Positions 8,601 through 55,899 of a DNA stretch of 64,000 bases are shown in pieces; position 1 is the first letter of the stretch, and each line of letters starts with the position of its first letter. The notes under the pieces were generated by a model. That model had not been told where the DNA came from. It did not search any database and saw only the letters and a program-made list of their open reading frames with translations. A program made the translations under genes and the position numbers. The stretch lies in the NCBI RefSeq assembly GCF_037042905.1, contig NC_087247.1, positions 12,276,001 to 12,340,000 on the forward strand. Reading direction: 5' to 3'. The stretch is from Lytechinus pictus (lineage: Eukaryota).

Positions 8601-11600
8601 ATGGTGGAACGTCCTCTGAGGAGGCCATATTTGAGGCTCGAAACAGAAATCCATTCAAGGTAGGGGGAGAGAACGGAGGGAGGGGGAGGAGGAGGGAGGG
8701 ATTGGAATGGAGGAAGTAGTGGGGAAGGAGGAGGAGGGACGGAGGGGGATGGATTAAGTATTGGGGGAGGGGGAGGGAGGGGGATGGAGGGTGGCGGAGG
8801 AAATCATGGGGAGGGGGAGGAGGTATAGGGGGAAGGGAATAGAGGAAGGAGGATGACGGGAGTCGGGTGGGAGATGAGGTAGTGGGGGAAGGTGGAGGGG
8901 GAAGGGGGTTGGAGGAAGTAGTGGGAGAGGGGTAGGTGGGAGAGGGGGGAGAAAGACGGAGGAAGTATTGGGAAGAGGGAGGGAAGAAGTAGTGGGGAGG
9001 AGGAGGTAGAGGAGGAATGGGGGGGTGGGAGAGGGACAGGAAAAGTAGTTGGGGAGGGAGGGGGTGGAGGAGGGAGAGTTGGCAACATGCATTTTTCTTG
9101 TCAACTACGCCTGTTGCCCTTGGTTAAGGTCCTAGTTTGTTTTTACAGCATGGCTAAATTTGACCCCACTTTTGATCAATCATTATTTGGCAAATTATTC
9201 ATGGGGACAATATATCTCATGGTTTCAAAGCTTGCAATATTCTAAAACCAAATGATCCCAATAACCTAATATCATGCACCCATATTTGCCATTTCCCACC
9301 CAAGTGTATAGAAAATATTGGTAGAAACAAAATGTTTGAAAAGATTATGTAGTCTTGTTGATCAAGGTTGTAGATAATGGAGATGGCCTTATGCACTTTT
9401 AAATGGATCTGAAAATAATATGAATATCTTTATCTGTGAAAATTTTTACTTTGTATTTTTGTAGGCTCGAGTTTTTGTGTACAAAGTGGGTGCTGATTCT
9501 ATGGTGTCTTCCGATGGTATCAGAGACATGGCCTGTACAAACAAAGGTAATTTCTTATCTAATTCATTAATTTAATTAGTTTTGTTTATTTCAAAATGGT
9601 TTTATTCCTGATACTGTTTCTATTAATATGTGGGTCCCATTTCATAAAGACTTGTTATAATAACAAATGCACAATTTCTATAACAAATTTACTATCAGCC
9701 AATCAGATTAAATGCTTTCAGTAGCTTTAAACTGTTATTGTGAATTTGTTATTGTAACAAGTTTTATGAAACGATCCCAGCACTGTACATAATTAGGATT
9801 CACCCACAGCAAATAATGAATGATTAGAAGTCTAGCCAGCCTGGAAATTATTTCAGCACGAATGGGCATAGCCATTCATAAAACATCCACAGTCATTAAT
9901 TATTATTGTGTTTAAGATGAAGTTTTTTATGATATGATAGGGTTTTTATAAGTTTGATCTGGATGTGTGTGATTTTTTTTCGGACAAGGAAATAGTCACA
10001 TATGTGCATGAGAATGGGCTACATGTACATCCATATATACAGAGGTTGCTTTTTCTTTGATATTTTTTGTAACCTTATGTAATATTCTTCTTTTTATTGG
10101 TATAATTGATGAATTGTTTTACTGTCTCATTGTAGTAACTTTCTTGTTATAGGGTGCAATAGTGCAGTCAATTCTTTAGTTGTAAAGAACAAAGAAAACT
10201 GCACAAATTATTATGTGATTAATATAAGTATTCTTTATGATGATGATGATGATGAAAGATGGAATTCATCTTTTTCACATGAATATTTCTTTCCAGGTTA
10301 CTTCAGCACAATCCAGTCATTTGGAGCTGTGAGACTCACTACTTTGGTACGCACTGTTGGCTAATTTCTCCTTGGTGTTAATTATGGCCCTTAATTAATC
10401 CTTTGATAAAAAGAGTATTATTTGTGTAAAATGAAAGAAAAATTAGAGCGTTCTGTGAAAGTTTGAAGGAAATCTGACCCCAAATGATTAAAGAAAAATG
10501 GTTGTTTCAAACTGAGATTACTATTGACATTGGTAGTGTGGTAAACACTTCTTATGTACCTTACTAGCAGGAATTATGTGTTTTTCTCCTGTGTACATTA
10601 ATATAAAAATATAATGTAGAGAGGGTTATATGTGTAAAAGATGACATTTTAATCATTTTGTGTAGTAAAACAAATAGAGGAGTAATCCTCACTCAACATC
10701 CAGTTTGAATTCCCCATAGGTATAATGATTACAACTTTACATAACTCTGAAAAATATTCATATATTTCTAGTTGTTTGACTGGTTTTGCTGAAATATTCA
10801 CCTATCTGCTTTTTTTCAAATGATATTGCCATTTCGAATGAATTTCTATTCCTATTTTAATATTTTTTAAATATAGGATTATGTGCCAGTGGTCAGCAGG
10901 CCGATGGTCCTAAGTGGTCACAAGAACTTCCAGTGGTCAGATATATACTTGGATGCCCTGGTAAGTCTTTGGGTGTAATTGTAGAAGTGGAGGTAGCAGG
11001 TGGGTTGGTGGAAGAAAAAAAAGTAGAAGTTGGTAATGATGGCTGTAGTAGTAGTAGGAGTNNNNNNNNNNNNNNNNNNNNNNNNNNNNNNNNNNNNNNN
11101 NNNNNNNNNNNNNNNNNNNNNNNNNNNNNNNNNNNNNNNNNNNNNNNNNNNNNNNNNNNNNNNNNNNNNNNNNNNNNNNNNNNNNNNNNNNNNNNNNNNN
11201 NNNNNNNNNNNNNNNNNNNNNNNNNNNNTTACCCTCATACTATTACTTCCACTGCAACAACTTTTATTTCATCTACCACTACTTCTTCTGCTGTGGTAGA
11301 TGAGATAAAAGTTGTTGCGGTGGTGATAGTAGTAGGAGGGTAGGAGATATAGAAATAAACAGAGGAGAGGGGGGTCATAGCCACTTTGCTGGTCCCCATT
11401 GTTCTGGCTATTGTAGAATATGAGAATTAGAAGAGAAAAAGGCGGCTTGGGTTTCCTGCTAAAAACATGCATTGGAGGGGGAACTAAGAGATAGATGGAG
11501 AGGCAGAGAAAGAAGAAAATACAAGACATGGTTATTATATATATGAAGTTTTAGCATAAAATGAACTGAAGTACTGTGTATTTTACCAATTACTAATAAT

Positions 11601-38600: not shown

Positions 38601-41600
38601 TTTTTAATCGATATTAGTTATATGATGGGTGTCTTATTTTTGGTTTGTGTTCAAGTGCTTTTTCCTAATGATTGCAACTTGATTCTTGAGAATACTATAT
38701 TACACAAATTCAAAATCAATATTCATTCTCAGTTGCGGAGAGACATGATCGACAGGAAATCAGGCACTGTTGAGCTGGAGACGCCAATCATGTCCAGAGA
38801 TGAGGTAAGAAACACATAAACTGACATAATCACTAGATTGCAAGGATCATTCGAACCCATTCAAATTGGCAACATGAATCGAGTCGCATTTGTAGTATGC
38901 ATTATTTTAGATTTAGATTTTTTAAAAAGTATTTGAACACCACTCTTAAGAAAAAGGGAAGAATAAAGAACTTGAAGGAATTCAGAATTTAGTGTTCAAA
39001 TTTATTGAATTAAGTAGTGAGAGTCATACTATAAATTGAACCAAATATTCCTGATAAAGAAATTCTTATTGAAGAGATTAAATAAGTGTAATTTCATGTT
39101 TTTTATAATATGTTTTGATAAGTTGTAATAATTGGGCTGCCAGAACTTATGGGTACGTTCATTTTTTACTACTTTATTTTACAGTTCACATAACAGGATA
39201 AGTTATTATTATTTTTCTTTAGATTTTCAAACAATTAATTTTGAGAGAAAGAAATTGCTTCTATCTTATTTAATTTCTCTTTTTGTCACAGAGATATTTG
39301 GAATATGTGAACATGACCTATTCTTATACATTCATTGACAACACAACGTTCAGGTAAGAGTGCTTATAATTCAAAGGAACATTTCACGAAACAAAATTTG
39401 ATTTTTTTTTTTCCTTGAACCGTTGTCCTAAGCTACCAAAATTCCTGCTAGTTTGTCGGTGAAAATCATTTACAATTATATCCTTCCTCATTACCTGGCT
39501 GTAAAAATCCAAGTTAGGTTTTAATGCCATGAAAACCAGCTAAAGAACTTATGAAGCAGTTTGATAATTTATATGGATTGAAGAACATATTGATCATTTA
39601 ATCATTTTGGCATTGTGAAGAACATTTTTTTAAATATTTTTGATGTTAAGAATTCTATTCTAAGATTGGTCAAAATTCAGCAAAAGTGATGGAAACTTAA
39701 TTAGTGTTTTGCTGACCATTTCAGCCCATATTTAGAGCCCTTATGCATTATAACGATAATTGCATCTAGCTTGCCTATCACCTTAAATAGTAATTATTTG
39801 CTTACTTTGTTGAAGAAGTAAGTTAATTTTGACATTAATGGAAGGTAGATTGTAGGAATTAGTGGAAAGTACATGTATTTCTACAATTATTCATGTTGGC
39901 TCCATTCTTTAGCTTTGTTTCTTCATCTATTTTACAGTGTCGCAATTGCTCAGCCCAGCTTCGACCTGTATCAACTCACACCTCCCGAAAATATGAATCT
40001 GGTTATGGGTAAGTAAAATCAACCGCACCCTAAGATTTGCAATTTGGAAAAATGTTGAATAGTGTCTATATATAATACCATATCTTAAAAATCTTTTTAT
40101 GATCAATAAATAATGATGATGATAATGATGGCTGGTTTGTCAGGGCCGAGTTTAAGTGGCAATTTTGCAAGTTAGTTTGTGAGATGATAGAATATGACCA
40201 GGAACTTTGGCAGATAAATCCTCTATCTATGCGTCCTATCCAAATCTGCCAATCTAGTGTCAATTAATTTTATATTTGAGCGGGCTGAAATTTCTGGTGA
40301 TGTAAATCTTCTTTGAAGGAGGAAAGATAATTTTCCTTCTTTGTGAAATGACATTATAGATGTTTTCATTCAAGATAATTTTATGTCCATGAGGTCAATA
40401 TTTACAATGTCTGGATTACTATTTTAGTAATTATCATTTGGAACATCAAAGAGGGAGACTGATGAAGTAATATGTAAAAGCTCTTTGTTGAATTCAAGTA
40501 TTGAATTTTGTTTTCTTTTATTTTCAGAGCTGACTAACATCATGGATAGAAGTGATATACTCATTGCTCCTTGGTAAGTTGAGTAATCTTCACAATTCCT
40601 TCTTTGGCCGAAGTTTCTATCATTCATGAAGTCAAAAGCCCTTTATACATGTAGTCCCCAATGTTTTTATTGTTACAAAGGGCCTATACTTATGCTACCA
40701 ATTCAGTGCATATATGTTTCAAATATTAGTTTTGTTTATTTATATCTTGCATTTCCATTCATATTTTTTCTTGTTTCTCAATAGTGATGCATACATTTCA
40801 TGTTTGGACCATACATCACTCTGGATTTTCCCCCTCTTAACAGATATTCATTTTCTGAGTATTTTCCCTTATTTCATTTGTAATTAATTCTATTAAACAG
40901 AATGAATAATCATCATAAATTCTTGTATAATTCCCCTTTAAAAAATTACATGGTACAATTATCCTGCATAAACCCTAATTAATTTTTACCTCTTATAACT
41001 ACAAGATCACATAAGATAAAGCAAGTAACGAAGGGGAAAGTAGAGAAATGCATGAGAAACTGAAGAAAAAGGTGTTAAAACTTTATTAAGATCCATTTTA
41101 AATGAAGAGAGGTATGGATATGTCTTAAAGCAGATATTAACTAATTGCACCATTTTGAGTCCTCAACTACTCATACCTGGCCAGTTTCCTGACCCCTAAT
41201 GCTAGTGAAGTCTAGTAATATAGACCCACTTGAATGATAACATGCTAATTAACAACTCAATACAATACATTTATATCGCAATAATTATGTTACCAAGAAG
41301 CAAAACAATTACTTTTCCTCTCAAAACATTTTAGTTTCTCTATACAAATACAGGTCAAGTTATTCTGTAGTATTAGTACATGAAGATATCTGAAAAAGTA
41401 TAACGTATGATTACTAACAGACCTTGCAAGCATGAGGGATGTGAATAGGTACTTTCAAGGAGGACATATTGTTATATTTTGTTTGAAAAATTAATGGAAA
41501 GATGCCTTTCGTATTTGAATACTATAACACTATACACTAAAAAGACAGGAATTTGAAATCCATTACTGCTCTGAATAGTGACCAGTCGATATTATGATTT

Positions 41601-44600
41601 AAAATCAATCTTTAAAAATTTAAATGTAAATCTTAAAGATTGATTTTTAAATCCAAATGTATTAGAATTTAAATCTTTATGGATTAATCTTAAATCCCAA
41701 CATTGACTGGTCACTGTTCATAACTGTAATGGATTTATTTTAAGTCCTTATAATTTAGAGTGTACATTGAGAATGAATATTCACGTAGTTAACATGTCAT
41801 TCTATATAATTCACGTCAGCAGTGAGTTATTAACATTTCACATGACTATAGAAGAATTAACTTTTTCTATTAACGTGAAGATTTAATCCAGCTGAAAAAC
41901 AATTGAGCACTGATATTTTGTTTCTTTTGATGAACCTCTGCAGGGAATTTTGTGAGCAGTTTGTTGGAATGGATCCTGCTAACATTTCAACAGAAGATAT
42001 CAAATCAGCTATCCAGGATACTATTAAGAATAACAGTATAGGACTCGGAAGTGGTGGAGTTATTGTACTACAAAAATGTAAGTTTGATTCATAACTTTAG
42101 TAGTTAAGAGCATGCTACTGAGACAAAGAGAGAAGAGAATGAAAGGTGTGTGAAACAGGCCCGTACCCTGTCTTACAAAGAGTTACAATTGATCCGATCA
42201 ATCTCAAGTATATGGTAATCCAGCAATGTCATAAAGTTTTCTTTAGGAAATTTGCTCAATGTCCTTTGAAAACAAAGAGAAGCATACTGAATTGTCAAGA
42301 AAACAGTGAATGTATGAATATACATCATTTCGAGAAAACATTTTGAACAAACATACATTTTTAGATGTTGACGTTGCTGGCTTTCCATAATTGCCGTTGA
42401 TCGGATCAATCACAACTCTCTGTTAGACAGGGCAGAAAGAGGATTGATAGATCTATATATTTTATCATCATTTTATTTTTATTAAGAGAACTTTGGCATG
42501 TGTGAAATATGCATGTAATTTGCTTTTTTTGTGCTTCTATTCATCAGGCAATGATGAGATGGTGAGAAAACTCCTTGTGGATGCAGAAGTAACAAGTAAT
42601 TTATCCTCCTACTGGGAAACAAAGACTGATGATATGGAAGAGTAAGTTTATGTCTTGAGCTAAGTTAAAGGGCAAGACCATCTTAACATAATAAAACAAG
42701 TTGGATTTGATTAAAAAGCCAAAAACTGAACAAGCTTAACACTGAAAATGGCTTCAAAGTTGGCTTTCAAATAACAAGTTTTTTTAATTTCATAAAACAA
42801 TTATATTCACATTCTGGTAGTTATGACGTTGCCCTTTTGTATTTTATTAATCAAAAGATTTTAATTTTAACATTATGATGTTTAAAATGTGGAATTGCCA
42901 TTGTTGTTAATAAAAATAGTGAGTGACATCATCGACTCTCATTTTCATATGACTGTGTTGCCATGTAACTGTTATGAGACAAATATGCAAAAAAATTTAA
43001 TGCTATAACTGTCTTATTGTACATTCGATTTTGATTATTTTTTTGTGTTATGTTTGTTTGACATTGGCCCATACATTACATACACCCCTCTTATTCTCCT
43101 CCTCCTCATTCTCATTCTTCTCCTTCCTCTTCTTCAGGGTTTCTGATTTTTTAATACATTGTACTCCTGCATTATCTGTTCTTTATAAATAATAATGATG
43201 GAAAATATTCATTGGATTAATGCATACCACACCATAATTCTCTCCAGAGGAAATACATTTTCCCTTACGAAGTCAACCTCTTGTATTAAAAGTTGAAATT
43301 ATTTTATAGTCAAATATTTGTACGAAGCCGCTGCATTTTATCATCCATTGTCATTTTTAAAAAGTAATGTCAGTCAATTTCTTTGTAAATAAAAGCTACA
43401 TCATCAGTCCTTAAGGGTTGACTTTGGCAAATTTGTTGTAATTGAGTACAGTATATATTTTTTCCATTTCTCCCCCACAGTAACGGCATCATTTTTGTCT
43501 TGGCTGCTACTCAGGGTGGTCTCATAAAAGTTTTTCCTAAAAGGTAAGTTTGTTTTTGTGATGTATTTTCTCATGTTTGTGGAATCGTCGTGGCGTAGTG
43601 GTTCTAACTCTTGCCTTTCGCTCAGTGGGTCGTGGGTTCAAATCCTAGTTCAGGCGTCAATTTCTTTCAGCAATAAAATATGTTCACATTGGCTGCCCTT
43701 AACCCAGGTGAGGAAAATGGTTGTGCCTGTTAGATGTATGTTCTTTGATACATAATGATACGGCATGCTCTTTAAGTGGTAGATAACTTTTTCTTATCAA
43801 TTTAATTTAATTCAGGTTTGTTTTACGAAAATAAATTTGTTTCATATAATGTACCTCGTAGTTCATGTTGTCCGACCAGCTGAAAATCAGAAGCATCGGA
43901 ATTGAAGGTAATTCAAATTGAACTTTTGATTCATATTAGAGAAGCTTTTCACATTGATTGAAAAAGAATGTTTTTCTTCCCATGCAGCACCATATCAATG
44001 TGGAGTGCAGACGAAATCCAAAGAATGCAAGACCCATGGGAACAGAGTTATTATCAACGCAGTCTGTACACAGATAGATATGTCTTTTCTGTTCCATACA
44101 ATGATGGTATGAAATGTCGATTTTTATCTTGATATGTATTCTTTATGCATTCTGTGCACACAGGGTTTTAATTCTCCACCACTACATGTATTTTGTTTCT
44201 CTTCATAATGTTTATCGGGGGGGGGGGGGGCATCCTGGTCTAGTGGCTACGACTCTTGTCTTTCAATCAAAGGGACATGGGCGAGATATTTACCCACATT
44301 ATGCTGCACTCAACTCGAGTGAGGTTAATGGGTACTTGGCTGTATTAATTCCTTGAATGCTCTGAGCGCTGAAAGGCAGCTCGAGATAAAGCCGGGGTAA
44401 TGATAAAAATAGCAATGTACCTCGGAATAGATTATTTCTAAATAGATGGCACTATATAAATGCCTATTATTATTATTATTTTGATTATTATTATTATCTG
44501 CTTATTGATATGCAAGGTTCTCGAGATGTTGCCTTCTGGATTTGCATAGTGAGGTGGCTTTAAAAGCTTCCAAATATCTAACTGATGTTTGTTTCTTCTT

Positions 44601-47600
44601 TTTGTGCTTTTTTTACCAGGTGAAGGACCTCTCGGTAGTTTAACAGAGTTCCGTTCAAACATCACCATCAGCAAATCAGTGCCTCTTGATAACCAAGCAG
44701 TTCCTGCAGGTAAGAAATTTTAATTCATCAATTATTTTTGTTCTTAAATTGATTAACCTTCTTGTATATGTCAATTTATCAATCATCAGTGTATCAACTT
44801 TTCGACTCACTCGGATTGTGGCACGCACTGTACTCAAATAGAACTTTTCGCTTTGACTTTCAGTGACTATACAATGACTTTAAAAAAAAAATTTGCTTAT
44901 ACATATACTGCATGAAAATTTTTTATATTTGTTAATGTGTGTAACCTCTACATTATTTAAAGTCAATTTTTTTTTAATATTCTGTTAGTTCTATGTGAAA
45001 TGTATTTCAAGTTTCAGTGAGAATTTCCCCTCTTGTATATAACATATGCAATTTAGTGTATGCTGTCACTAATAAATCATATTTTGTTTGAATTTTTGAC
45101 GAAATTCCAAATTTATTTGTGAATCCAATCTGTTTTTGATTAAAATTAGTATTTTCTTATACAAAATATCTATCTTTTATCATTTATTTCAGTTGTCATG
45201 GTCATGATGGATCCAGCTTTTTTCAATGATTCTTGGGATCAGACCTCGAAGGTAAAGAAAAGGACACTCATGAGTATTTAGAAAGAATGATTAAGACTCA
45301 TCCATTTGTGACCAACTCTGACCAAAGATAGTGGCTACTTAATTTCAGAACTCCCATGGGTTTTTTTACAGGGAAACACAGTTCCAGTTGGCAATGCCCT
45401 TTTAGCAGTTGTCTAACATTGAATTCCCATGTTCTTTGGCCCGTATTCTGAAGTCGGGTTTAACTTAAACTCGGGTTTAAAGTTGTGGTTTAAGTGTGGA
45501 TAGCCAATTGTTACATAAATCACCAACAGTAGAGATATAATATTTCAGCTCATTTGACTCTCAAATGATTCATAATTGTCTAGGAAGTATAGATAGATGA
45601 TTGTCTTCACCATTGAAGAATCGGGAGAGAGCACAGTAAATATAAGAAACATACAACTATATAAAAACTTTGACACTTTTGGCTTCCCATAATTTTAGCA
45701 CAGAGTTAGACCATGGTCTAAGTTAAACCTGACTTCAGAATACGGGCCTTTATGTATTGTTAGTATTAATCTCAGCAATTTGATAAGTTCAGTAATTTTG
45801 CAGAGAGTGATATTTTGTTGTATTGGTGTAATGGTTCTGGCTCTTGCCTTGTAATCAGAGAGTCAAAGCCCACCGCTGCCGAGTGTCCTCTGGCAGTGCG
45901 TAAATAAACATTTTGCCTCTCTCCACCCAGGTGCTTAATATGCTACCCAGTAGGAGGTGAAAGTCATTGTCGCTTGTCCAGTGCTGTGTGCGACTCAATG
46001 GCAACTGGCTGAAATCCCCCCCAGGGAGTGGAGCATGTGAATATAATTTCTGCGCAGGAATGACTGAACGAATCTGATGATGGGGGTGATAATAAATCTG
46101 TAAGCGCTGAGACACGTTCAATGCCTTATAAACCTTTGTTATTGCTATTATTATTTTAAGATAATGATATATATGTAACTTGCTTCTGATTTGTTTTCAG
46201 GGTTTCAACGATCATACATTGGAATACTCCTGTGCAAACATGGTGAGTTTTTCTTGGTGAAGGGGCTTGTGCCATCACAACGGGTTATGGTGTCTGGTCG
46301 GGCAATCACGTGACGCAACTGTTCGAGAAAAGGGCTCCCTAAATTTCAGTTTACCAGACCTTTTGTTTATTTGGCTCTAATTTTCACAAAACATTTAAAT
46401 TGGACCTGAACATTTGTTTATGCGACTGATAATTTTCACAAAGTATCGGGTAAACTGGACCCGACCTCTTGGGAATTTAGTGGGCCCTTTTCTCGAATGG
46501 TCTGGTTACGTGATTGCCTGACCGGACGTGATAACCCGATGTGATAGCACAAGCCTTGTGAAGGTCAAGGGAGTTGGTAGGGGTAATAAAGCAAAATCCT
46601 AGTGGCAGTTTCTGATTGTGCAGATATTGATATCAGGTTTGCGATTAATCGCAAAATGAAATGGTCTATCAAGATCATCGTTGCATGTGGATTTTGTTCA
46701 GTAGGAACCAATCACAGTTGCTCTTTCAAATAAGCGATTAATCGCTAACCTTTGTGTTACGGGGCCCTGGTTGATGAAAGGTAGAACAGGGAACGAAGAC
46801 CTACTTGTATAGTCAAACCCTTCTATTAAGGCCACACATGGGAAACAAAAGAAGTTGCCATTGGTGAGAGGTTGACTTTATATACAGGTTCTATAATGCA
46901 TTCCTTTCAAACGGGGTCTTTAAAGACAGGATTCCTCTTGAGACAGGTATGTGATAATGAAACACAAATGCGTCACACAAATGCGTCAGGAGAAGTTGCA
47001 AACTTTTGAGCAGAGTGATGGTTTTGTAGCTTCATTGGAAAATGGAAAAACAGAACATTTTCATGATGGAAATGACAGGAAATAAATAATAAAAATGCTT
47101 TTGAGACGGTCTTTAAAACTTTTCCTCGTAATGAGTTTCCAATAACATGGATATCATCAGTGAAAAACAAATATTTTTTTTATAAAGCTTAGATGTCTGA
47201 AATTTTATCCTAATCAACGTATTTTTTCTTTGAAATTAGGAGCTGAAATGTTATCTTCTTGACGATGGTGGTTTTATCATAGCTACGAACCAGATATTTG
47301 AACAAGATGAGGTAAGTTTATTGTTTTGCTCTTTCTCTTTCTGCTTTTTATTCCTTTTCTCCTTCTTGAAGTCTGCATTCAGTTGTGGTAAATCCCCCTT
47401 AAAGTGAAGGTTGCTATTCCGATCCATTCTAGATAATATGAATGTGTATGCCCTAAAATAGTTATGATATTAAGGATATTAGATGTCTGGATATTTTTTC
47501 TCTTTGATATAAAATTTTACTTTTCAAGCATGGTAAGAGCTGAAAAAGTCAGGATATGATCCTTGCCTATTACTTTCTGATAACTAATCATTAAATTTGT

Positions 47601-50600
47601 AAGATACGTGCACAGATAGTTCCACTTATTCTTCTTATCATTTATTAATGGCTGTCTAATTTATCATGATATCTGATTTGTGATATCAAAATCTTTGTTT
47701 TTTTTATCATCTAGCTGTTAAGTGATTCTCTTTTTTAGAAAGCATGTTACTAAATCAAGAAAGCTATAACCTATTAAACAAACATCAAATCTAAGTTCCA
47801 AAGAGTCTGTGCTGTAAGGAAAGTCAACTGGCCACCAATGACATCTACATGGGGTTTTGTTGTATTGTGCCATTTATGTTTGATTCTATTCTCCTGCAAT
47901 GTCATGCAATCTTCATCATTTGTCTTATTTATGGCAGGTTGGGCGTTTCTATGGAGAAATTGATGGCAACATCATGGTTGAAATGACAAATTATGGAATC
48001 TATGATCGGTATGTAGTCTTTCTGTCATTTCCAACAACTGTGGAGTGAACATGTAACTCTTACATGCAACTGTAATTCATTCCTTATAACTTGATCGGTA
48101 TTTTGTTTCAATCTCTTTAAAGTCCAGATTACTTAGCTATTTCAAAATGTATTTTTCATTATTGATTTCAGAGAGTGGATGATTACCTTTCTCCTATTTT
48201 AACAAACCCTTTAGGGTAGAAGTAACCTCCTACAGTAATATCTTCCCTTAGAATGTGATAAAAGATATTTTCAATTTGTATTTGTCAAAGTATGGACTAT
48301 AGACTGAACCACTTTAAGAATTATCTTTGTCATTATTTCTTTCAATACTTGAAAATATGACTTCTAAACTCATATCATACAATATAATTTGAAAAATAAA
48401 CCTTTTTAAGTTGGTACTTTTCAAGGACATCTTACACCCAACCATTTTAAAATTTCTCTTCATTATGATTTCCTTTCAATGCTTGAAAATATGACTTCTA
48501 AACTCATATCATACAATAGAATTTGAAAAATAAACCTTTTTAAATTGGTACTTTTTAAGGACATCTTACACCCAAACATTTTAAAATTTCTCTTCATTAT
48601 GATTTCCTTTCACTATTTCTTGGGAAAATATGACTTGTAAAGCCATATTGTACTATAGAATTTGAAAGATAAGCCTTTTTTTAATTTGGTACTTTTTAAG
48701 GACATCTTACAGCCAACCATTTTAAAATTTCTCTTCATTATGAATTTCAGCAAGCAGATGTTTGACTACCAAGCGGCTTGTGAGAGGGTTCCACCAAGTG
48801 ACAGTGCAGGCATTAAATCTTGGTTTGTGGTATGTACCTCAGGTTTCCTCACATTAAAATTACCCTTCCAAGGCTACATTCCAAATAATCTTGTGTATAA
48901 CTGGGATACATCCATTTAATCTTTTGCTAATTCATTCACTATGAATCCGTACACCGAAGACAATAGCACACAAAATTCCTTGTGCTAGCTCATCTCCCCG
49001 CGTCATAGTCAACCAAGCAAAGAGACTCCATTTCCTCTTTTCACTTTGTCCGTCGCGTGTTCGGACGTCTCAGATAAGTGGGTCTCGATATCTTGAATTC
49101 TATTCCATCCATGAATAATTATTTCACATTTGATCCTGGCTGCTTCACCTAAAGGGGAAGCGATCAAACTATCACTGTCTTGTCTCTCACTGACTGTACA
49201 ATTTCAATGGCTTGTCTTAGAATATACCTTTTTAGACAACTATGAGTGATACACAGGATGAATTAACCCATATTTCTTTTGTGTATAAAGAAACCGATAC
49301 GTTTTTAAGAGGAAAGGTACCTGTAATGTATTTATTGCAATATGAATGTAGGCCCTATTGAGCAGTGAGTAAGTGTGTTATTATGGGGGCGTGGGGGTAT
49401 CGTGGTCTAGTGGCTAAGACTCTCGTCTTTCAATCTGAAGGACGTGGGTTCAACTCCAAGCCATGGCGTGTTTTCCTTCAGCAAGAAATTTACCCACATT
49501 GTGCTGCACTCAACCCAGGTTGAGGCAGACAGGAAGTAATTCCTCAAAAAGCTCTTTAAATGGGGACTGTCCTCAAAGTTGGCCAATCAAACATGCAGTG
49601 GGGGATATAGATCCATGTGCTCCAGTGTTAGCCCTGTTACATATACCTATTTATAAAACAATTATAAATATGTTTTGAATTTTGGCATATAAAAATTACC
49701 CTAAAAATGTATGAAATAATTGCTGCCATACTGCATGTACTTTTGTGACCCAAGTCGATTTATTGTGCCTGACTTTGTCTTAGTTAACTTTGTAAAATCT
49801 TATATTTTCCATGCAAAGTTCTGCCCTTGATTGACAAGATATTATGACACACCAACAGTTTATTTATTTTCCATGTTGAAGGTGTATGCATTTAGATTCC
49901 ATTTGATTTTTTCTTTTCCAAAATATATTCATTGTCTTTTTTCATTTCTAGAAAGATTCACTTGTATATGATTTCTTTACTCACCCACTTTTTTCACAGC
50001 CAACTTTTTATGATGTATTCAATTTCCAAATATGGGCTGCAAATGCATTGTGGTAAGTCCTTTTTAAACATTAATTAAAAGATTGTAATACAAACATGTT
50101 AATTTGTAAGCCTTCTTTTCCTATCTTCTCTTTCAATAAGATTTTTTTTTTAATTCAACACCTGAACATATTAAAAACAAAAAATCTTAATATGCATGTT
50201 TGTAAATAAAAATATAATTATGAAAATTCATTTTCAAACCAGAATTTTCTAGAGAAATTTGAATTCTGATTGAAGTTCCAATGTGTGTTTATATGCTATG
50301 ATTGATATATTGAGAACTCTCTTTTAAATTCCCCAAAATTTTTTATTCTTTGTCTTTCCCCCTTAATAGGACTTTTATTCATCAAACCTTTATGGATTTT
50401 CTACTATTTGGATGGACAGATGTTTCAAGTAAGTATCTGACAAATATCTCCTTGCTTTGTAAATGCATGATATGCACTTGTCATTTGATTAATTATTAAT
50501 TTCAATTTTTGTTATTGAAAAGTAGCATTGGATTCACTTCTATTTGCGAATGTTTTGCAATGATGAGATACATACATATACAAACCAACAGTTAAAATGC

Positions 50601-53600
50601 ATTCTATATAGTCTGCATTGTCATTATTGCGCCACCAACTTAGAGGCTGAAGGCATTGCCTTGCATGCATTGTTGATATTGTCCTGATGCATCTCAGACA
50701 ACTTGCGCACATTCCTATATCCTTTGAGGGAGGGCGCTATGACATTATGATGTCATATGCATATGTCTACTTCATATATTTTCTCTTCAATATTTTTACT
50801 TTTCTATAACTCAGTGATCCATGCTGCTGAGACTACAGAATCCCTCGGCAACGTAAGCTGTATCAAACTGATAAACAACTACTACTTTGGCCAAAACCTG
50901 AGTGGAAATGGTGCCAAGGAATGTGTCAACTGCAGCAGGTCTGAATGAGATTTGTTTTCTTCTTGACATTTCTGAAAACAGTTACATTTGAGGGGAATAG
51001 ATTCCTGTGAACTTACCTCATTAAAAGCAGAGTGATGATTATTTATACTTCCTTTTTTTCTCTGACAAAATAAAGCTGCACAGCTGACTTATGTACATTG
51101 GGTTTATATTCTCACATTGGATTATAAACCTGTGTGGGCCACATTCTAATATCTTGTTAACTGTAGCCTTGTAATAATAATAATAATAATAATAATACTC
51201 AATATTTATAACGCGCTTTTCCCACATGGCCCAAAGCGCTCACAATTTCAGTTAACTTATTCATACAAACAAAAAATCAGAATGACATATTAAATGAAGC
51301 CAGTTGCCTAGAAGAAACAAGTTTTAAGGGACTTCTTAAATGACTCAATTGTTGGGGATTGTCTTATTGTGAGAGGGAGTTTGTTCCATTCCATCAAGGA
51401 TGCAACAGTGAATGTTCTATCTCTGGTCTGTGTACACTATATTTATATACTAGGCTCTTTAAGTATGCTCTCGTACTGATGAAAACTATTTGTTTATTAA
51501 CAATTATTCCCAGACAATGTAATAGAGAGAATGTGTTCTGTTAAAGTGAATGTCTTTCATCATAATCTTATTTGTATTTGCCTCTCATTGATCTATTGAA
51601 TAATTTTGCCGGAACACTACTAAAACAGCTGCTTAGAATCTAGACAACAGTACTCAAGGACTCTTCTGGCTTAAATTTATCTTTCATTGAAGACCAAAAT
51701 TTCCACAAATTGGATTTGAAAATATTTATTGATTTTCTTTTTTTTTCATCCAGGAGTTGGGCTGCTAGTCGAGTTGGTGGTACCAATCTAGTGATGCTTG
51801 TGACAGAGAGTGACCTTGATTGTGATACTTGCCCCTTGTCTGTGGTCAGACAATCGCCACAGGAGCTTGGTCCAGATATCCTTTTTAAGATAAATTTGAT
51901 TAAAAGAAAATATATACTCATTTAGTGGCAGTGAGTCATATTTTGGAGCAGTGAGTTCAGTTATATGGCTCTGTAAAAGAGCACAAGCTAAATAGATATC
52001 ACCTTTTAGGCTTCCTTGACTCTTTCTTTTGAATTGTTCATAAGTATAAAATCATTTTCACCATCACATGATCAGGATCCCCGTTTCAGAGGGATTCAGC
52101 ACCATGTATCCCATTGCTGCCACCATTAAAACCCTAGAGGGATCGAGCACCATGTATCCCACCGCTGCCACCATTAAAACCCTGGCTATGGCTCTGATTA
52201 TACTAGAGGGATCCAGCACCCTGTATCCAACCGCTGCCACCATTAAAACCTTGGCTATGGCCCTGATTATACTAGAGGGATCCAGCACCATGTATCCCAC
52301 TGCTGCCACCTTTAAAATCCTGGCTATGGCCCTGATTATACTAGAGGGATCCAACAACATGTATCCCACTGCTGCCACCATTAAAACCCTGGCTATGGCG
52401 GCTCTCATTATACCAGAGGGATCCAGCACCATGTATCCCTTTGCTGCCACCATTAAAATCTTGGCTATGGCTCTGATTATACTAGAGGGATCCAGCACCA
52501 TGTATCCCACCGCTTCCACCATTAAAACTATGGCTATGGCTCTGATTATACTAGAGGGATCGAGCACCATTATCCCACTTCTGCCACCATTAAAACCCTG
52601 GCTATGGCTCTGATTATATACTAGAGGGATCCAGCACCCTGTATCCCACCGCTGCCACCATTAAAACCCTGGCTATGGCCCTGATTATACTAGAGGGATC
52701 CAGCACCATGTATCCCACTGCTGCCATCTTTAAAATCCTGGCTATGGCCCTGATTATACAAGACGGATCCAACAACATGTATCCCACCGCTGCCACCATT
52801 AAAACCCTGGCTATGGCTCTGATTATATTATAGGGATCCAGCACCATGTATCCCATTGCTGCCCCCATTAATACAGGGATGCTATTTATCAGACTAATGT
52901 CTGAATTCAGACATTATTTTCAACCTATTTTCAGCCATAGAAAACACGTTTTTGTGTTACGAAACGGCTTGTTCCAAATGTTTTCCAGACTTTTTAAGCC
53001 ATTCTTAGTGGCATCGCCGTCTATAATGATAAAATGTCACTCCCCAATTACAATTATCCACAGTTTTAACTATACTATTCAATGCCATGATACTCCATAC
53101 AGATCTGACCGAAGAAGGGGTGATGAAAACAACACACGTGCCTAACACTGCTTGAGAATGGGAACCAAACCATAGTGCCCTCATCACATTTATTCCAAAT
53201 CTAGCAGAATATGCCGGAATGAAATGGCTATTGCCCACCACCATCCGGTCAAATCAACCCCCCCCCCCCCCCGCTATTCATCTTTCTCCCAAGCATTCAA
53301 TTCATGTTTGGTTCAAATGTTACTGAGATATGTTGTAAGAAATACTTAGTACACTGTTCAGTGTTCATTCCACTTTAAATGCACCTCAAAATTTATAAAC
53401 ATTCAGGATGACCACAAGAATTCGCCCCAGTGCAGTGAAAATTTCTAGAATGCCTAATGAATATTCACAAATGAAGCACAAACTGACTCCTTTGCAGCTC
53501 ATTCTGCCACTAGTCTGACTAACTAGTGTGCGATGAGTTGCCTGGTCAATTTACCTGATTTGAACTCCATTTTGGTGAACTGAAATTACCATCAATTTCC

Positions 53601-55112
53601 CTAATTTTTTTAAATTCCAGTTCATTCTGCTTGATCTCCTGCCGATCCAAGCAAGTGTGATGGGGCCTTGATCATAACATTTTTATGTATTTAGGTTTTT
53701 TTTTTTTTCAAAGTTGTATCCTTAACGGTTCATTAATTCACAAGATGCCCCTAGCCCTTGTGATGAGACGCCAAGATACAGAAGGAGACCTAGTGAAAAT
53801 TGTTACGCATTTAGTGAAGCTGTAAGTTCAATTATTTAATTCATGTATTTATTTATATGTTAGTGTTGGTTGGCGGAGAGTTTGTATCAGTAGACAGTTA
53901 ACTTGTGTTATTTACCTTAATCCTTAGTCTTAGTGTAATGTGAGGGTTGAGTACTGAGCATTGTCATCAATCTTACCTGTTGCCTAGGTTACTCATTCCA
54001 ATGTTCCGAAATTCGGCTTCCTTATGAAGTCTCACCTGAATCTGCTGAGGCAGCGGGTTGGAGTTGGAAATATTGCGCTGATTATGGTGTCTTTATAACA
54101 AAACAAAAAAATTTGGCTGTATTAATTTGCCCATGAATATTATAAAGAAAAGAAACATTTGAAAAAGAGTACCGGAGGGATGATGCCATGATGGTCATTT
54201 GTAATATAATATGAATGTTTCCAACTTCCAAACAAGATATCCATGTGCAAGGCATACATTGTATGATAATAAAAGTCAGGATTTGAATTGCTACTCTCAA
54301 CGACACCAGGGCCTTTTAGAAATATTTTGGCTTGACATTTTGAATCTCTATGTATCAAGACTTCAAGGTATAGGCAAATGGTTAACTGAAGGTCCCTGTA
54401 GTTCTTAACCCTTTGCCCGCCATGGACAGAATCGTGCACTCCTGCGCCACATTAATTTCAAGGTGCAACATTGAGAGGGGCTTTGCATGGACTATACTAA
54501 TTCAGCTCACAATAGCTTTTGATTGGTTTATTGTACAGAAAAGCTTTGTGTGTACACAGTACAATGCAATACACTCATCACTAATGTACGTACATATGTA
54601 TGAACAAAAGACTCAATGCACTCAATGTGTATTGTGAGCAGAGTGTGACTTGAGTCGAACTAGGCAGTCTGTTGTATGTGACTCTAGTCGAATGAAGCAG
54701 GCAAAGAGTTAAGTTACCATCTTTGCTACTACCATTCCTATATGTCCCATGGCTCAGCAGCCAAGCAAAATCAAAGTTTAATGGTATTTACTAAAATTAC
54801 AAAGTTCCCATAATATCAAGAGTTATGCATCTTGGACATCATTCAGTACAAAGGCTTATACCTGAAATATAGTTATGGTTGTAATAATAATATAAAACAT
54901 GTAATAAAAATGTACACGAAAGTCATCGTTTTAATCTGAAAAAGTCATTATAATAATATTACCATCTCTTATTATTTATTTTGTTCTCCCCTCTTTTGCC
55001 TTTCCAGGAAAATACAACCATTTGCAGAGGTGTGGTATCACTAGCATCGCCATGGTTACTTCTAATTTTACACATATTCTACCTTGGAATTGTAAGGTTT
55101 ATTAGTGCGTAA
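5551..55112 (+). CDS. CACNA2D: Voltage-dependent calcium channel subunit alpha-2/delta (5'-partial gene, 33 coding exons in window, ~862 aa)
   Basis: Hand-spliced exons keep frame throughout and give family hallmarks: [92 protein letters not shown] and a hydrophobic C-terminus. Paralog not assignable. Confidence 0.96.
5695..5857. mobile_element. Short palindromic MITE
   Basis: aatacctcacatatgctctacggcggccgtac ... gtatggccgccatagaacaaatgtgactgaggtatt. Confidence 0.65.
6383..6482 (+). CDS. CACNA2D: CACNA2D exon: [33 protein letters not shown]
   Basis: aatag|...|gtaagt; completes DSSGS (MIDAS DxSxS). Confidence 0.95.
6830..7230. mobile_element. Harbinger-like MITE interrupted by a hAT-like MITE
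   Basis: ctg-gggctgtttcataaag ... cttcatgaagtgggttt-cag. Confidence 0.6.
6950..7192. mobile_element. hAT-like MITE with 8-bp TSD TTTACCAT
   Basis: TIR catggtcgta...tatggccata; TSD at 6942-6949 and 7193-7200; body resembles 1670-1895. Confidence 0.8.
7327..7395 (+). CDS. CACNA2D: CACNA2D exon: [23 protein letters not shown]
   Basis: ttccag|...|gtaaga; matches family VSCF..VQAN.RNKK. Confidence 0.95.
7843..7935 (+). CDS. CACNA2D: CACNA2D exon: [31 protein letters not shown]
   Basis: cacag|...|gtgagt; phase 0-0. Confidence 0.93.
8522..8659 (+). CDS. CACNA2D: CACNA2D exon: [46 protein letters not shown]
   Basis: tttacag|...|gtaggg; TDG motif. Confidence 0.93.
8660..9080 (+). repeat. Polypurine (G/A-rich) low-complexity tract
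   Basis: Many GGG/GGA runs directly after the exon donor. Confidence 0.9.
9465..9546 (+). CDS. CACNA2D: CACNA2D exon: [27 protein letters not shown](G)
   Basis: tttgtag|...|gtaatt. Confidence 0.94.
9632..9778. mobile_element. Harbinger-like MITE
   Basis: gggtcccatttcataaagacttgtta ... taacaagttttatgaaacgatccc; related to 58143-58298. Confidence 0.7.
10297..10346 (+). CDS. CACNA2D: CACNA2D exon: (G)[16 protein letters not shown]
   Basis: ttccag|...|gtacgc; phase 1-0. Confidence 0.92.
10877..10960 (+). CDS. CACNA2D: CACNA2D exon: [28 protein letters not shown]
   Basis: atatag|...|gtaagt. Confidence 0.95.
11062..11228. other. Assembly gap (167 N)
   Basis: Run of n. Confidence 1.
11770..11826 (+). 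CDS. CACNA2D: CACNA2D exon: [19 protein letters not shown]
   Basis: tttgtag|...|gtaagt. Confidence 0.93.
11993..12136. mobile_element. Small MITE with ~22-bp TIR
   Basis: ttgtgttggtgcaagaatgccc ... gggcgttcttgcaccgacacaa. Confidence 0.7.
13612..13638 (+). CDS. CACNA2D: CACNA2D 27-nt microexon: DPGSNETRK
   Basis: Pyrimidine tract then caaag|...aag|gtagta; phase 0-0; NETR resembles the vertebrate alpha2delta-3 segment before LLGVVGTD (from memory). Confidence 0.7.
14494..14628. mobile_element. Harbinger-like MITE (ccgtaacacaaag subfamily)
   Basis: TIRs shared with 63136-63255 and a half copy ending ~46768. Confidence 0.7.
14700..15335. repeat. Degenerate ~165-bp tandem repeat containing a 65-bp TIR mini-element (14832-14896)
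   Basis: Recurring ccagata.cctc...tcctgtatttattc...gggattt..tttggta; TIR atgggtggcggagcagagga / tcctctgctccgccgcccat. Confidence 0.6.
15868..16464. mobile_element. hAT-like MITE (TSD GTG[T/C]ACTT) with nested MITE 16097-16441
   Basis: cactggcgta ... tacactactg; 8-bp TSD at 15860-15867 and 16465-16472; inner TIR ggccattcttggtca / tgaccgagaatggcc. Confidence 0.75.
17288..17362 (+). CDS. CACNA2D: CACNA2D exon: [25 protein letters not shown]
   Basis: accag|agtcagcag...aag|gtattt; exact acceptor ambiguous (tandem in-frame CAGs). Confidence 0.92.
18076..19036 (+). mobile_element. Non-autonomous Helentron-type element (HINE/DINE-1-like) with internal tandem repeats
   Basis: Sub-terminal IR gtctcacctgcat (18081-18093) / atgcaggtgagac (19002-19014); GGC microsatellite; about five 160-190-bp units; T-run at left end and cttgtt at right end. 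Confidence 0.8.
19337..19476. mobile_element. Harbinger-like MITE
   Basis: gggccccgttgcataaa ... tttatgcaacggggccc. Confidence 0.8.
21137..21686. repeat. 139-bp tandem repeat, ~4 copies
   Basis: agctagaagtttg recurs at ~21137, 21272, 21411, 21550. Confidence 0.92.
22581..22768. mobile_element. Harbinger-like MITE (tttcataaagctgttcgtaa subfamily)
   Basis: Long TIRs, CAG/CTG flanks; same family as 32518 and 62930. Confidence 0.8.
22908..23109. mobile_element. MITE with TIR aggggaatccaacc
   Basis: 14-bp perfect TIR, TTAA-like flanks. Confidence 0.6.
23985..24113 (+). mobile_element. SINE 3' fragment with (TTA)n tail
   Basis: gcgccttgagcacc...gtggatatgtgcgcaatataaataccc(tat)n. Confidence 0.6.
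24855..24929 (+). CDS. CACNA2D: CACNA2D exon: [25 protein letters not shown]
   Basis: tttttag|...|gtaaga. Confidence 0.95.
25215..25455. mobile_element. CACTG-terminated palindromic MITE
   Basis: cactgcgaaaactccggtgttgatttaacaccag ... ctggtgttaaatcaacaccggagtttttgcagtg. Confidence 0.85.
29223..30712. repeat. Long diverged inverted repeat (~360-bp arms) around a CpG-rich spacer
   Basis: 29223-29586 is the reverse complement of 30362-30712, e.g. atcaaaattttaaatgactggaacaatcacac / gtgtgattgttccagtcatttaaaattttgat. Confidence 0.85.
32518..32853. mobile_element. Two abutting Harbinger-like MITEs
   Basis: gtgggtgtttcataaagctg...cagctttatgaaacactcac, then gggaggcgtttca...tgaaactgcccc. Confidence 0.7.
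38106..38177 (+). CDS. CACNA2D: CACNA2D exon: [24 protein letters not shown]
   Basis: tgtgtag|...|gtgagt; VDFLEVE matches family LDFLDAE/VDLSEVE. Confidence 0.9.
38733..38804 (+). CDS. CACNA2D: CACNA2D exon: [24 protein letters not shown]
   Basis: ttctcag|...|gtaaga. Confidence 0.93.
39292..39353 (+). CDS. CACNA2D: CACNA2D exon: [20 protein letters not shown](S)
   Basis: tcacag|...|gtaaga. Confidence 0.92.
39938..40008 (+). CDS. CACNA2D: CACNA2D exon: [23 protein letters not shown]
   Basis: tttacag|...|gtaagt; phase 2-1. Confidence 0.9.
40528..40573 (+). CDS. CACNA2D: CACNA2D exon: (E)[14 protein letters not shown](W)
   Basis: ttttcag|...|gtaagt; phase 1-2. Confidence 0.9.
41533..41764. 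mobile_element. TACACT-terminated palindromic MITE
   Basis: tacactaaa...aaatccattac...tgaatagtgaccagtc / gactggtcactgttca...gtaatggattt...tagagtgta. Confidence 0.7.
41944..42077 (+). CDS. CACNA2D: CACNA2D exon: [44 protein letters not shown](C)
   Basis: ctgcag|...|gtaagt; phase 2-1. Confidence 0.9.
42166..42432. mobile_element. MITE with ~35-bp TIR
   Basis: ccctgtcttacaaagagttacaattgatccgatcaa / ttgatcggatcaatcacaactctctgttagacaggg. Confidence 0.75.
42548..42641 (+). CDS. CACNA2D: CACNA2D exon: [30 protein letters not shown](D)
   Basis: catcag|...|gtaagt. Confidence 0.93.
43481..43543 (+). CDS. CACNA2D: CACNA2D exon: [20 protein letters not shown]
   Basis: ccacag|...|gtaagt. Confidence 0.94.
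43581..43725 (+). mobile_element. tRNA-derived SINE (head and core)
   Basis: A box tggcgtagtgg, B box ggttcaaatcc, core aacccaggtgagg. Confidence 0.7.
43988..44106 (+). CDS. CACNA2D: CACNA2D exon: [39 protein letters not shown]
   Basis: atgcag|...|gtatga; YY.RSL...YVFS.P motif. Confidence 0.93.
44227..44497 (+). mobile_element. tRNA-derived SINE with (TTA)n tail, B-box region deleted
   Basis: tggtctagtgg head; tgctgcactcaac..gtgagg..aatgggtac core. Confidence 0.75.
44620..44709 (+). CDS. CACNA2D: CACNA2D exon: [29 protein letters not shown]
   Basis: ttaccag|...|gtaaga. Confidence 0.92.
45193..45251 (+). CDS. CACNA2D: CACNA2D exon: (V)[19 protein letters not shown]
   Basis: tttcag|...|gtaaag. 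Confidence 0.9.
45438..45748. mobile_element. MITE with ~30-bp TIR
   Basis: ggcccgtattctgaagtcgggtttaactta / taagttaaacctgacttcagaatacgggcc. Confidence 0.85.
45820..46156 (+). mobile_element. Degenerate SINE
   Basis: tggtgtaatgg head, ctctccacccaggtg core, tgtaagcgctgagac...ttatta tail. Confidence 0.55.
46201..46242 (+). CDS. CACNA2D: CACNA2D exon: [14 protein letters not shown]
   Basis: ttttcag|...|gtgagt; phase 0-0. Confidence 0.88.
46264..46555. mobile_element. Long-TIR MITE with a 9-bp TSD-like flank (Mutator-like)
   Basis: ~80-bp TIRs; tggtgaagg (46255-46263) / ttgtgaagg (46556-46564). Confidence 0.75.
47240..47311 (+). CDS. CACNA2D: CACNA2D exon: [24 protein letters not shown]
   Basis: aattag|...|gtaagt. 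Confidence 0.95.
47938..48008 (+). CDS. CACNA2D: CACNA2D exon: [23 protein letters not shown](R)
   Basis: ggcag|...|gtatgt. Confidence 0.95.
48338..48742. repeat. Tandem triplication of ~135 bp that includes the intron pyrimidine tract
   Basis: aaaatatgactt...ggtacttt..aaggacatcttaca..cattttaaaatttctcttcattatga, 3 copies. Confidence 0.9.
48751..48829 (+). CDS. CACNA2D: CACNA2D exon: [26 protein letters not shown]
   Basis: tttcag|...|gtatgt. Confidence 0.94.
49393..49550 (+). mobile_element. tRNA-derived SINE
   Basis: tggtctagtgg, gggttcaactcc, tgtgctgcactcaacccagg. Confidence 0.75.
50000..50052 (+). CDS. CACNA2D: CACNA2D exon: [17 protein letters not shown](W)
   Basis: tcacag|...|gtaagt. 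Confidence 0.92.
50370..50428 (+). CDS. CACNA2D: CACNA2D exon: [19 protein letters not shown]
   Basis: taatag|...|gtaagt. Confidence 0.9.
50815..50938 (+). CDS. CACNA2D: CACNA2D exon: (M)[40 protein letters not shown](R), alpha2/delta junction region
   Basis: actcag|...|gtctga; SCI...YYF...C.NCSR is the delta start. Confidence 0.92.
51754..51875 (+). CDS. CACNA2D: CACNA2D exon: [40 protein letters not shown], ending at a U12 AT donor
   Basis: atccag|...ccag|ATATCCTTTT. Confidence 0.92.
51876..53741 (+). other. U12-type (minor spliceosome) AT-AC intron
   Basis: 5' site ATATCCTTT at 51876; branch point TCCTTAAC at 53719-53726; terminal AC at 53740-53741; splicing restores frame. Confidence 0.92.
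52087..52872. repeat. 69-bp minisatellite, ~11 copies, inside the U12 intron
   Basis: Unit ctagagggatccagcaccatgtatcccactgctgccaccattaaaaccctggctatggctctgattata. Confidence 0.95.
53742..53821 (+). CDS. CACNA2D: CACNA2D exon: (E)[26 protein letters not shown], after a U12 AC acceptor
   Basis: TCCTTAAC-15 nt-ending in AC|...|gtaagt; frame consistent. Confidence 0.92.
55008..55112 (+). CDS. CACNA2D: CACNA2D last coding exon: [37 protein letters not shown]-signal-like tail
   Basis: tttccag|; C-x-G then a hydrophobic stretch and TAA. Confidence 0.93.
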   Translation, partial: ENTTICRGVVSLASPWLLLILHIFYLGIVRFISA

Positions 55113-55899
55113 TGGTGGTCAACGATTCCTGTTTTCTAATTTCTAGGTATTATTTCATGATGATATTATATAAGAATATTACTTCATGTTTTTATTGAAT
55201 TATTATATGTTGTTTCTTTTCATTAGGTATCGTTTATGTAATGTTTAAATGTGGACACTGAAAGTATGTTTATACTAAATTATCTTTGTGATGTGCTGAT
55301 ATTATTTTACCTGTCAAACAGCACTGATTTTACTTATCATGGCATTATAAGCAATTGTAATTGACAAATTTAATCAACTCTTGCTAATAAGATATCCATC
55401 TGTAATTGTAAAAAAGTGCTTTTAGACTACATAAAAGTAATCATGGTTCAAAGAAAATTACTCAAATCATTTGACACTGTATCATACACTTGATGAAATG
55501 TACTTTAGTTTCGTGAAAATCATGGAATTTTGAGTATTTTTCATGGATTAAGGTATGAAATATAGATGGCTATATAAATAGCAATCATGAATTCAAATTC
55601 ATTTATTCAAATCATTTCTGCCACTCGAACTATCCCATCATGAAGGATTTAATTTATGTAGTATGATATACATGTTCAAATTTTATCTTATGGACTATGA
55701 ATTTTATAAAATGTCAAATTGGTGAAAAATTATGTTTTGAATCTTGAACTATGGGTACACTCAAGTGAATTATATGTAAGAACTGTTTGAATATTGTATA
55801 TAATTTTTTATACTTGATGATGTAATATATCAAGTGTCTATTATTAGATTATAGTTATTTGTATGCAATGCCCAACAACTTATTTGTCTATTTTTTTCA

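Follow-up and report, generated by a model that had tools for sequence, protein, structure and literature searches.

The 64,000-nt window analysed here (Lytechinus pictus, contig NC_087247.1, positions 12,276,001 to 12,340,000; coordinates below are positions in this stretch, on its plus strand unless noted) carries part of a calcium-channel alpha2delta subunit gene. We consider it very probable that its intron at 51876–53741 (1866 nt, phase 1) is a genuine U12-dependent AT-AC intron of a CACNA2D-type gene, that it is the probable orthologue of the vertebrate intron and that it is constitutively removed. The assignment of mechanism as U12-type AT-AC is secure; the splice signals, RNA split reads and the presence of all four minor small nuclear RNAs (snRNAs) support it, in agreement with an earlier sequence-only reading of this DNA. 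The intron is real but ordinary, in that all four vertebrate alpha2delta genes are already known to carry one of this kind.

Splice signals, RNA joint and minor-spliceosome machinery

The upstream exon ends in GAGCTTGGTCCAG at 51875, followed by the donor G|ATATCCTTT at 51876–51884, which matches the U12-type 5′ splice-site consensus /ATATCCTT bound by U11 and U6atac. At the other end, the intron closes with TTCAC at 53741, the terminal AC (53740–53741) forming the 3′ splice site, and the following exon opens with AAGATGCC at 53742. The branch-point sequence TCCTTAAC at 53719–53726 is a perfect U12 consensus whose end lies 15 nt from the 3′ splice site (GGTTCATTAATTCAC). This fits the usual description of a U12-type branch site, TCCTTRAY about 10–20 nt from the 3′ splice site with no pyrimidine tract needed. 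The sequence-only reading had placed the donor, the branch point and the terminal AC at just these positions, and had also proposed the frame-keeping join cca g|aa gat. The spliced frame is indeed kept, with QELGP| running into the next exon through a Glu codon split G|AA (phase 1).

Neither motif is enriched in the window: ATATCCTTT is observed twice against 1.47 expected, and TCCTTAAC twice against 2.19 expected. The above-chance signal is the placement of both motifs at exon ends, not their number. The other candidate donors were set aside as chance occurrences. The ATATCCTT site at 50717 sits in a repeat within the GT..AG intron 50429–50814, and the site at 39478 and those on the minus strand have no strict-consensus TCCTTAAC partner downstream. 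The branch site itself lies inside GTATCCTTAAC (53716–53726), where it is overlapped by GTATCCTT, which resembles a U12-type 5′ splice site. This overlapping GTATCCTT takes part in no RNA joint, and the overlap is probably a coincidence of two overlapping consensus sequences.

The RNA data were raw reads of three stranded RNA-sequencing runs depleted of ribosomal RNA (ribo-depleted), from the same species, and Logan contigs of one run from a second study, mapped to 50300–55700 of the window. Split reads joining 51875 to 53742, and thus skipping 1866 nt that end AT..AC, number 10, 9 and 8 in the three runs, with 9, 8 and 8 distinct starts. The same joint is present in a 1587-nt transcript contig from the second study, which links five exons (50369–50428, 50815–50935, 51751–51875, 53742–53821 and 55008–55700). 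The three neighbouring joints, 50428→50815, 50935→51751 and 53821→55008, are all GT..AG; the second allows a 3-nt shift, the true intron being 50939–51753. Throughout the exons, the first mate falls on the minus strand, as for plus-strand mRNA in a dUTP-type library. The sequence-only reading had named these split reads as its check and GT-AG-only junctions at other coordinates as its refutation; no alternative joint from either flanking exon appears above the listing threshold in the three runs and the contigs.

It is scarcely credible that the major (U2-type) spliceosome removes this intron, or that the joint was made by reverse transcription or assembly. A rare U2-type AT-AC class does exist, but its donor form begins ATAAG, whereas the donor here is the U12 consensus ATATCCTTT. 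A perfect TCCTTAAC also stands at the right distance, and no pyrimidine tract separates it from the AC. As to an artefact, the joint has 1 nt of microhomology and hence 1 nt of positional ambiguity, but 25 distinct read starts in three runs, together with a multi-exon contig from another study, argue against one.

The same genome (811 Mb, 368 contigs) was searched with the Rfam models, using their gathering scores as cut-off, and all four minor-specific snRNAs were found above it. There are four U12 loci (109–115 bits, best 114.6), two of U6atac (best 134.8), three of U11 (best 112) and two of U4atac (best 91.8). By direct reading, the genome's U12 reads AUGCCUUAAACUAAUGAGUAAGGAAAAU, in which the segment AGUAAGGA pairs with UCCUUAAC with one A bulged. 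The 5′ end of its U11 is AAAAAGGGC, complementary to the donor ATATCCTTT, and its U6atac carries GAAAGGAGAGA, whose AAGGAGA box is likewise complementary to that donor; the donor's CCUUU is complementary to both. From the consensus and these snRNA sequences, U11 and later U6atac would pair with ATATCCTTT and U12 with TCCTTAAC, and by the established U12 mechanism such pairing would drive the splicing. The RNA shows excision exactly between G51875 and A53742.

Removal of the intron and the idea of a gate

The sequence-only reading had further proposed that the minor spliceosome would, through retention of this intron, gate an anchored against a released or degraded product. What it said of the reading frame holds. 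Read-through adds 16 intron-encoded residues and meets an in-frame stop as the 17th codon (TAG, 51923–51925), so that the protein is truncated ahead of its hydrophobic C-terminus. The gate itself is not borne out. In ten 181-nt bins within the intron (51929–53738), the sense depth is 0 except for 0.10–0.22 in three bins of one run, against 8–14 and 4–6.5 in the flanking exon bins of the three ribo-depleted libraries. Full retention would give some 380 intron reads, which limits steady-state retention in these samples to one or two percent at most; about half of the intron is uniquely mappable. No read of the three libraries crosses an unspliced boundary. The minor-intron junction totals 27 reads, in line with the 14, 39 and 31 for the neighbouring U2 introns. 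In the sampled RNA, the intron behaves as one that is constitutively and efficiently removed.

The fate of any retained transcript bears on the same question. Between the stop at 51923 and the 53821/55008 junction downstream of it there are far more than 50 nt, and nonsense-mediated decay (NMD) would be expected by the 50-nt rule, rather than a stable anchorless protein. That slow or regulated minor splicing acts as a gate, with retention giving an anchorless secreted alpha2delta or switching the gene off, is thus very unlikely, and the existence of an urchin paralogue that manages without the intron (see below) speaks in the same direction. The idea has some precedent. Tissue-dependent retention of minor introns is known in mammals, with cryptic splice-site use tabulated near the minor introns of Cacna2d2 and CACNA2D4 (PMC6717393), and knock-down of U6atac lowers calcium-channel expression in cardiomyocytes (PMC8767276). 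One could also imagine that the minor spliceosome becomes limiting in particular cells or stages, such as neurons, muscle or eggs, and that retention there serves as a conserved off-switch for alpha2delta, acting by NMD or by way of a product that lacks the anchor. We hold this to be highly improbable. If it were true, the off-switch would act on the surface expression of calcium channels, and one paralogue would have escaped it by precise intron loss.

Host gene, its paralogue and other urchins

The host is, by its homologies, a CACNA2D-type gene for an alpha2delta calcium-channel auxiliary subunit. The window exons match the Pfam family VGCC_alpha2 (PF08473) weakly, with E values of 2e-4 and 0.02. 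The exon directly upstream of the minor intron (51754–51875, 122 nt, RNA depth 8–14, joints on both sides) covers Pfam positions 361–396 at E 0.021 and 14.1 bits, under the cut-off of 22. P0002, a gene prediction from another sea urchin, tiles the window exons from 41957 to 51895. Its region corresponding to 50815–50938 and 51754–51875 aligns to human alpha2delta-1 residues 963–1027 in PDB chains (E 8e-9). The second exon ahead of the AT-AC intron (50815–50938, joints 50428→50815 and 50935(+3)→51751(+3)) is about 84% identical to its P0002 homologue, a part that corresponds to alpha2delta-1 963–1005. The next two urchin exons resemble alpha2delta-1 residues about 1038–1073 in an alignment by eye, for which the human sequence 1030–1073, equal to Pfam positions 390–431, was confirmed against PDB.

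Downstream of the minor intron lie an 80-nt exon (53742–53821, RNA joints on both sides) and the last intron (53822–55007), which is GT-AG (GTAAGT...CAG) in phase 0 with a joint 53821→55008 supported by 5, 14 and 12 reads and the contig. The coding part of the last exon (55008–55112, stop TAA at 55110–55112) gives ENTTICRG and a 26-residue hydrophobic tail that looks like a membrane anchor or glycosylphosphatidylinositol (GPI) signal. This pattern, xxCRG and a hydrophobic tail, matches the DCGG pattern of alpha2delta-1 (EDYTDCGG). The AT-AC intron is thus the last but one, in the delta part and just upstream of the anchor-signal region, where the sequence-only reading had put it.

Searching the genome with the Pfam family brought up a second alpha2delta-like exon on this contig, 2 Mb upstream (G000:C3:10319691-10319891; 23.7 bits in the genome search, and 24.6 bits, above the cut-off, for the paralogue exon). 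It belongs to a diverged second alpha2delta-like gene spanning G000:C3:10310800-10321000 (L011:1510-1704, L015, L016). The paralogue exon encodes SFGVQPVPYSNLLLVIQDRDCSCNARNSIQLDPEEVIYNETAWCQRLRQFKTRRRPDTCFNYDPN uninterrupted across the AT-AC site and ends at a GT donor, with a last exon of EDSSECGRG and a hydrophobic tail about 1 kb downstream. The last U2 intron, at Pfam position 424 in phase 0, is common to both genes. The paralogue has no minor intron, and within 40 kb no U12-type donor adjoins an exon; the ATATCCTC of the paralogue region falls within an open exon and is no splice site. The simplest reading of these sequences would be that the minor intron was precisely lost in the paralogue. 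A PDB search with the paralogue exon gave no match.

Two public predictions from another sea urchin, P0001 and P0002, read through the AT-AC donor (..QELGRDILFK / DILLK; QELGRDILFKMNSTDNLP). Such read-through fits a conserved G|ATATCCT and the lack of a usable GT donor. Having crossed the non-GT donor, both predictions lose the true C-terminus, which is a warning for annotation. P0002 is, in addition, a chimera with a COG5-like N-terminus in which internal alpha2delta exons are skipped. A search of protein representatives with the 40-aa exon gave three matches only, two of them urchin fragments, a homologue search with P0002 returned only P0002 itself, and a metagenome scan gave no match.

Several further features of the gene region were recorded. 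The minor intron carries, as passenger sequence, a 69-bp tandem repeat of 10.6 copies (52134–52871, with no strand assigned; Tandem Repeats Finder, 88% matches). This minisatellite, also seen at 52088–52183, occupies 40% of the intron, and since 69 bp is 23 codons, it yields a spurious 187-aa open frame (52050–52610). Contigs of run X1 reach the minisatellite with loose ends, so related copies are probably present elsewhere. The intron upstream (50936–50945/51751–51753) has a weak donor, CAG|GTCTGA, and a joint ambiguity of 3–4 nt, and is nevertheless the best-supported junction, with 19, 10 and 10 reads. Linked variants at 51781, 51839–51840, 51856 and 51865 occur in about 20–40% of X5 reads and in a few of X6. 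The change TC>AT at 51839–40 would replace the Ser of CPLSVV by Ile, and the three remaining variants are synonymous; together they look like another allele, the species being highly heterozygous. The intronic fragments 50662–50842, 51205–51385 and 54463–54643 have summed X1 contig depths of 1335, 104 and 414, with RNA reads on both strands and numerous loose ends; they are dispersed repeats that are transcribed and have nothing to do with the alpha2delta mRNA. Finally, 167 N at 11062–11228, either an assembly gap or a masked stretch, stand in one of the gene's upstream introns.

Relationship to the vertebrate CACNA2D minor introns

All four vertebrate CACNA2D minor introns presumably sit no more than a few kilobases from the 3′ ends of their genes. 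CACNA2D1–4 are all classed as minor-intron genes (PMC6865273, PMC8767276), and the MIDB supplementary tables give one minor intron for each (Olthof et al. 2019, PMC6717393). In those tables (PMC6717393), the exon end and donor of CACNA2D1 read CTT|GTATCCTTT, with the branch site TTCCTTAAC and a length of 362 nt; CACNA2D2 has ACT|GTATCCTGC, CTCCTTGAC and 104 nt; CACNA2D3 has GGT|ATATCCTTT, GCCTTAAC and 219 nt; and CACNA2D4 has AAT|ATATCCTGC and 286 nt. The donors of CACNA2D1 and D2 are GTATCC, of the GT-AG subtype, and that of CACNA2D4 is ATATCC, of the AT-AC subtype (PMC6717393). The sequence-only reading pointed to AT-AC introns in channel alpha genes and missed that the alpha2delta genes themselves were already listed (PMC6865273, PMC8767276, PMC6717393). 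In the comparison with CACNA2D1–4 that it suggested, a minor intron is present in all four; the same codon position is compatible, not proven.

To compare positions, only alpha2delta-1 sequence confirmed in PDB was used. A C-terminal peptide first ascribed to it, KCERLKAQKIRRRPESCHGF, is in no alpha2delta-1 PDB chain, and codon positions of CACNA2D2–4 were left out of the comparison for that reason. The urchin split codon, in phase 1, stands six codons before a Cys that, by eye, aligns with C1044 of alpha2delta-1, and 16 residues past the TCP motif against 15 in alpha2delta-1. The Cys falls at Pfam position 403 in the human fragment and in the paralogue. The equivalent human site would be T1037|S1038 in phase 1, where ACT T|CN would give the exon end CTT, as published for CACNA2D1. 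Literature searches brought up nothing usable on U12 introns in Drosophila alpha2delta genes (stj, CG4587, CG12455) or on sea-urchin minor-intron surveys; what looked like a mention of U12 in a preprint on CACNA2D4 proved to be the number of an affiliation.

A number of points weigh against our interpretation. The RNA depth is modest, about 10×, and about 6% of each run was read. We infer minor-spliceosome dependence from the consensus, and the A residues of the branch site are 17 and 16 nt from the final intron base, a little longer than the optimum of 11–13 nt. The exon end CTT| also fits P1043/C1044 (phase 1), L1030, L1031 and L1065 (phase 0) and C1059/F1060 (phase 2) of alpha2delta-1, so that orthology at the same position is compatible with the sequences and not proven by them. 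The 26-aa downstream exon (53742–53821), which holds the Cys, has no match in PDB or Pfam, and hence the Cys anchor rests on the alignment by eye. Lastly, an alpha2delta gene can do without the intron, as the paralogue shows.

Two of these points would favour a genuine U12 intron that is not orthologous to the vertebrate one, having arisen by independent gain or by sliding: the several other alpha2delta-1 sites that fit CTT|, among them L1065|E1066, which is the position of the last (U2) intron in the urchin, and the urchin paralogue with no intron at the site. We nonetheless find this origin unlikely. The gene family and the terminal gene region are the same, the 9-nt donor is identical to that of CACNA2D3, and CACNA2D1 is compatible with a phase-1 site equally far from the conserved Cys. 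Animals, moreover, rarely gain minor introns, most of which are ancient (Baumgartner et al. 2019, PMC6865273). We judge same-site orthology with the vertebrate CACNA2D minor intron to be likely, with rather good confidence. The intron would then have been inherited from a bilaterian or deuterostome ancestor as the orthologue of the CACNA2D1–4 minor intron, rather than being a lineage-specific regulatory device.

As an echinoderm data point, the intron suggests that the alpha2delta minor intron probably predates vertebrates, and that of the two subtypes the AT-AC form, which CACNA2D3 and D4 also have, may be the older. It should also lend itself to clean assays when the minor spliceosome is knocked down in sea-urchin embryos, the neighbouring U2 introns serving as internal controls. 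Beyond this, it opens no new question.

Compared with known systems, the urchin intron stands closest to the vertebrate CACNA2D introns, which are in the same gene family, one minor intron to a gene. Its 9-nt donor ATATCCTTT is identical to that of CACNA2D3, and its AT-AC subtype is that of CACNA2D3 and D4, unlike the GT-AG subtype of CACNA2D1 and D2. The vertebrate branch sites are of the CCTTAAC/CCTTGAC type, as in the urchin. The urchin intron is far longer, at 1866 nt against 104–362 nt, and carries the 69-bp minisatellite. The AT-AC introns of the voltage-gated calcium and sodium channel alpha1 genes, which are described as conserved across animals (Wu and Krainer 1999, as relayed in PMC6865273 and PMC8767276), share the intron class, the splicing machinery and the channel-complex module with it. 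The alpha1 subunit, however, is pore-forming and unrelated to the extracellular auxiliary alpha2delta, and there is no homology between the introns.

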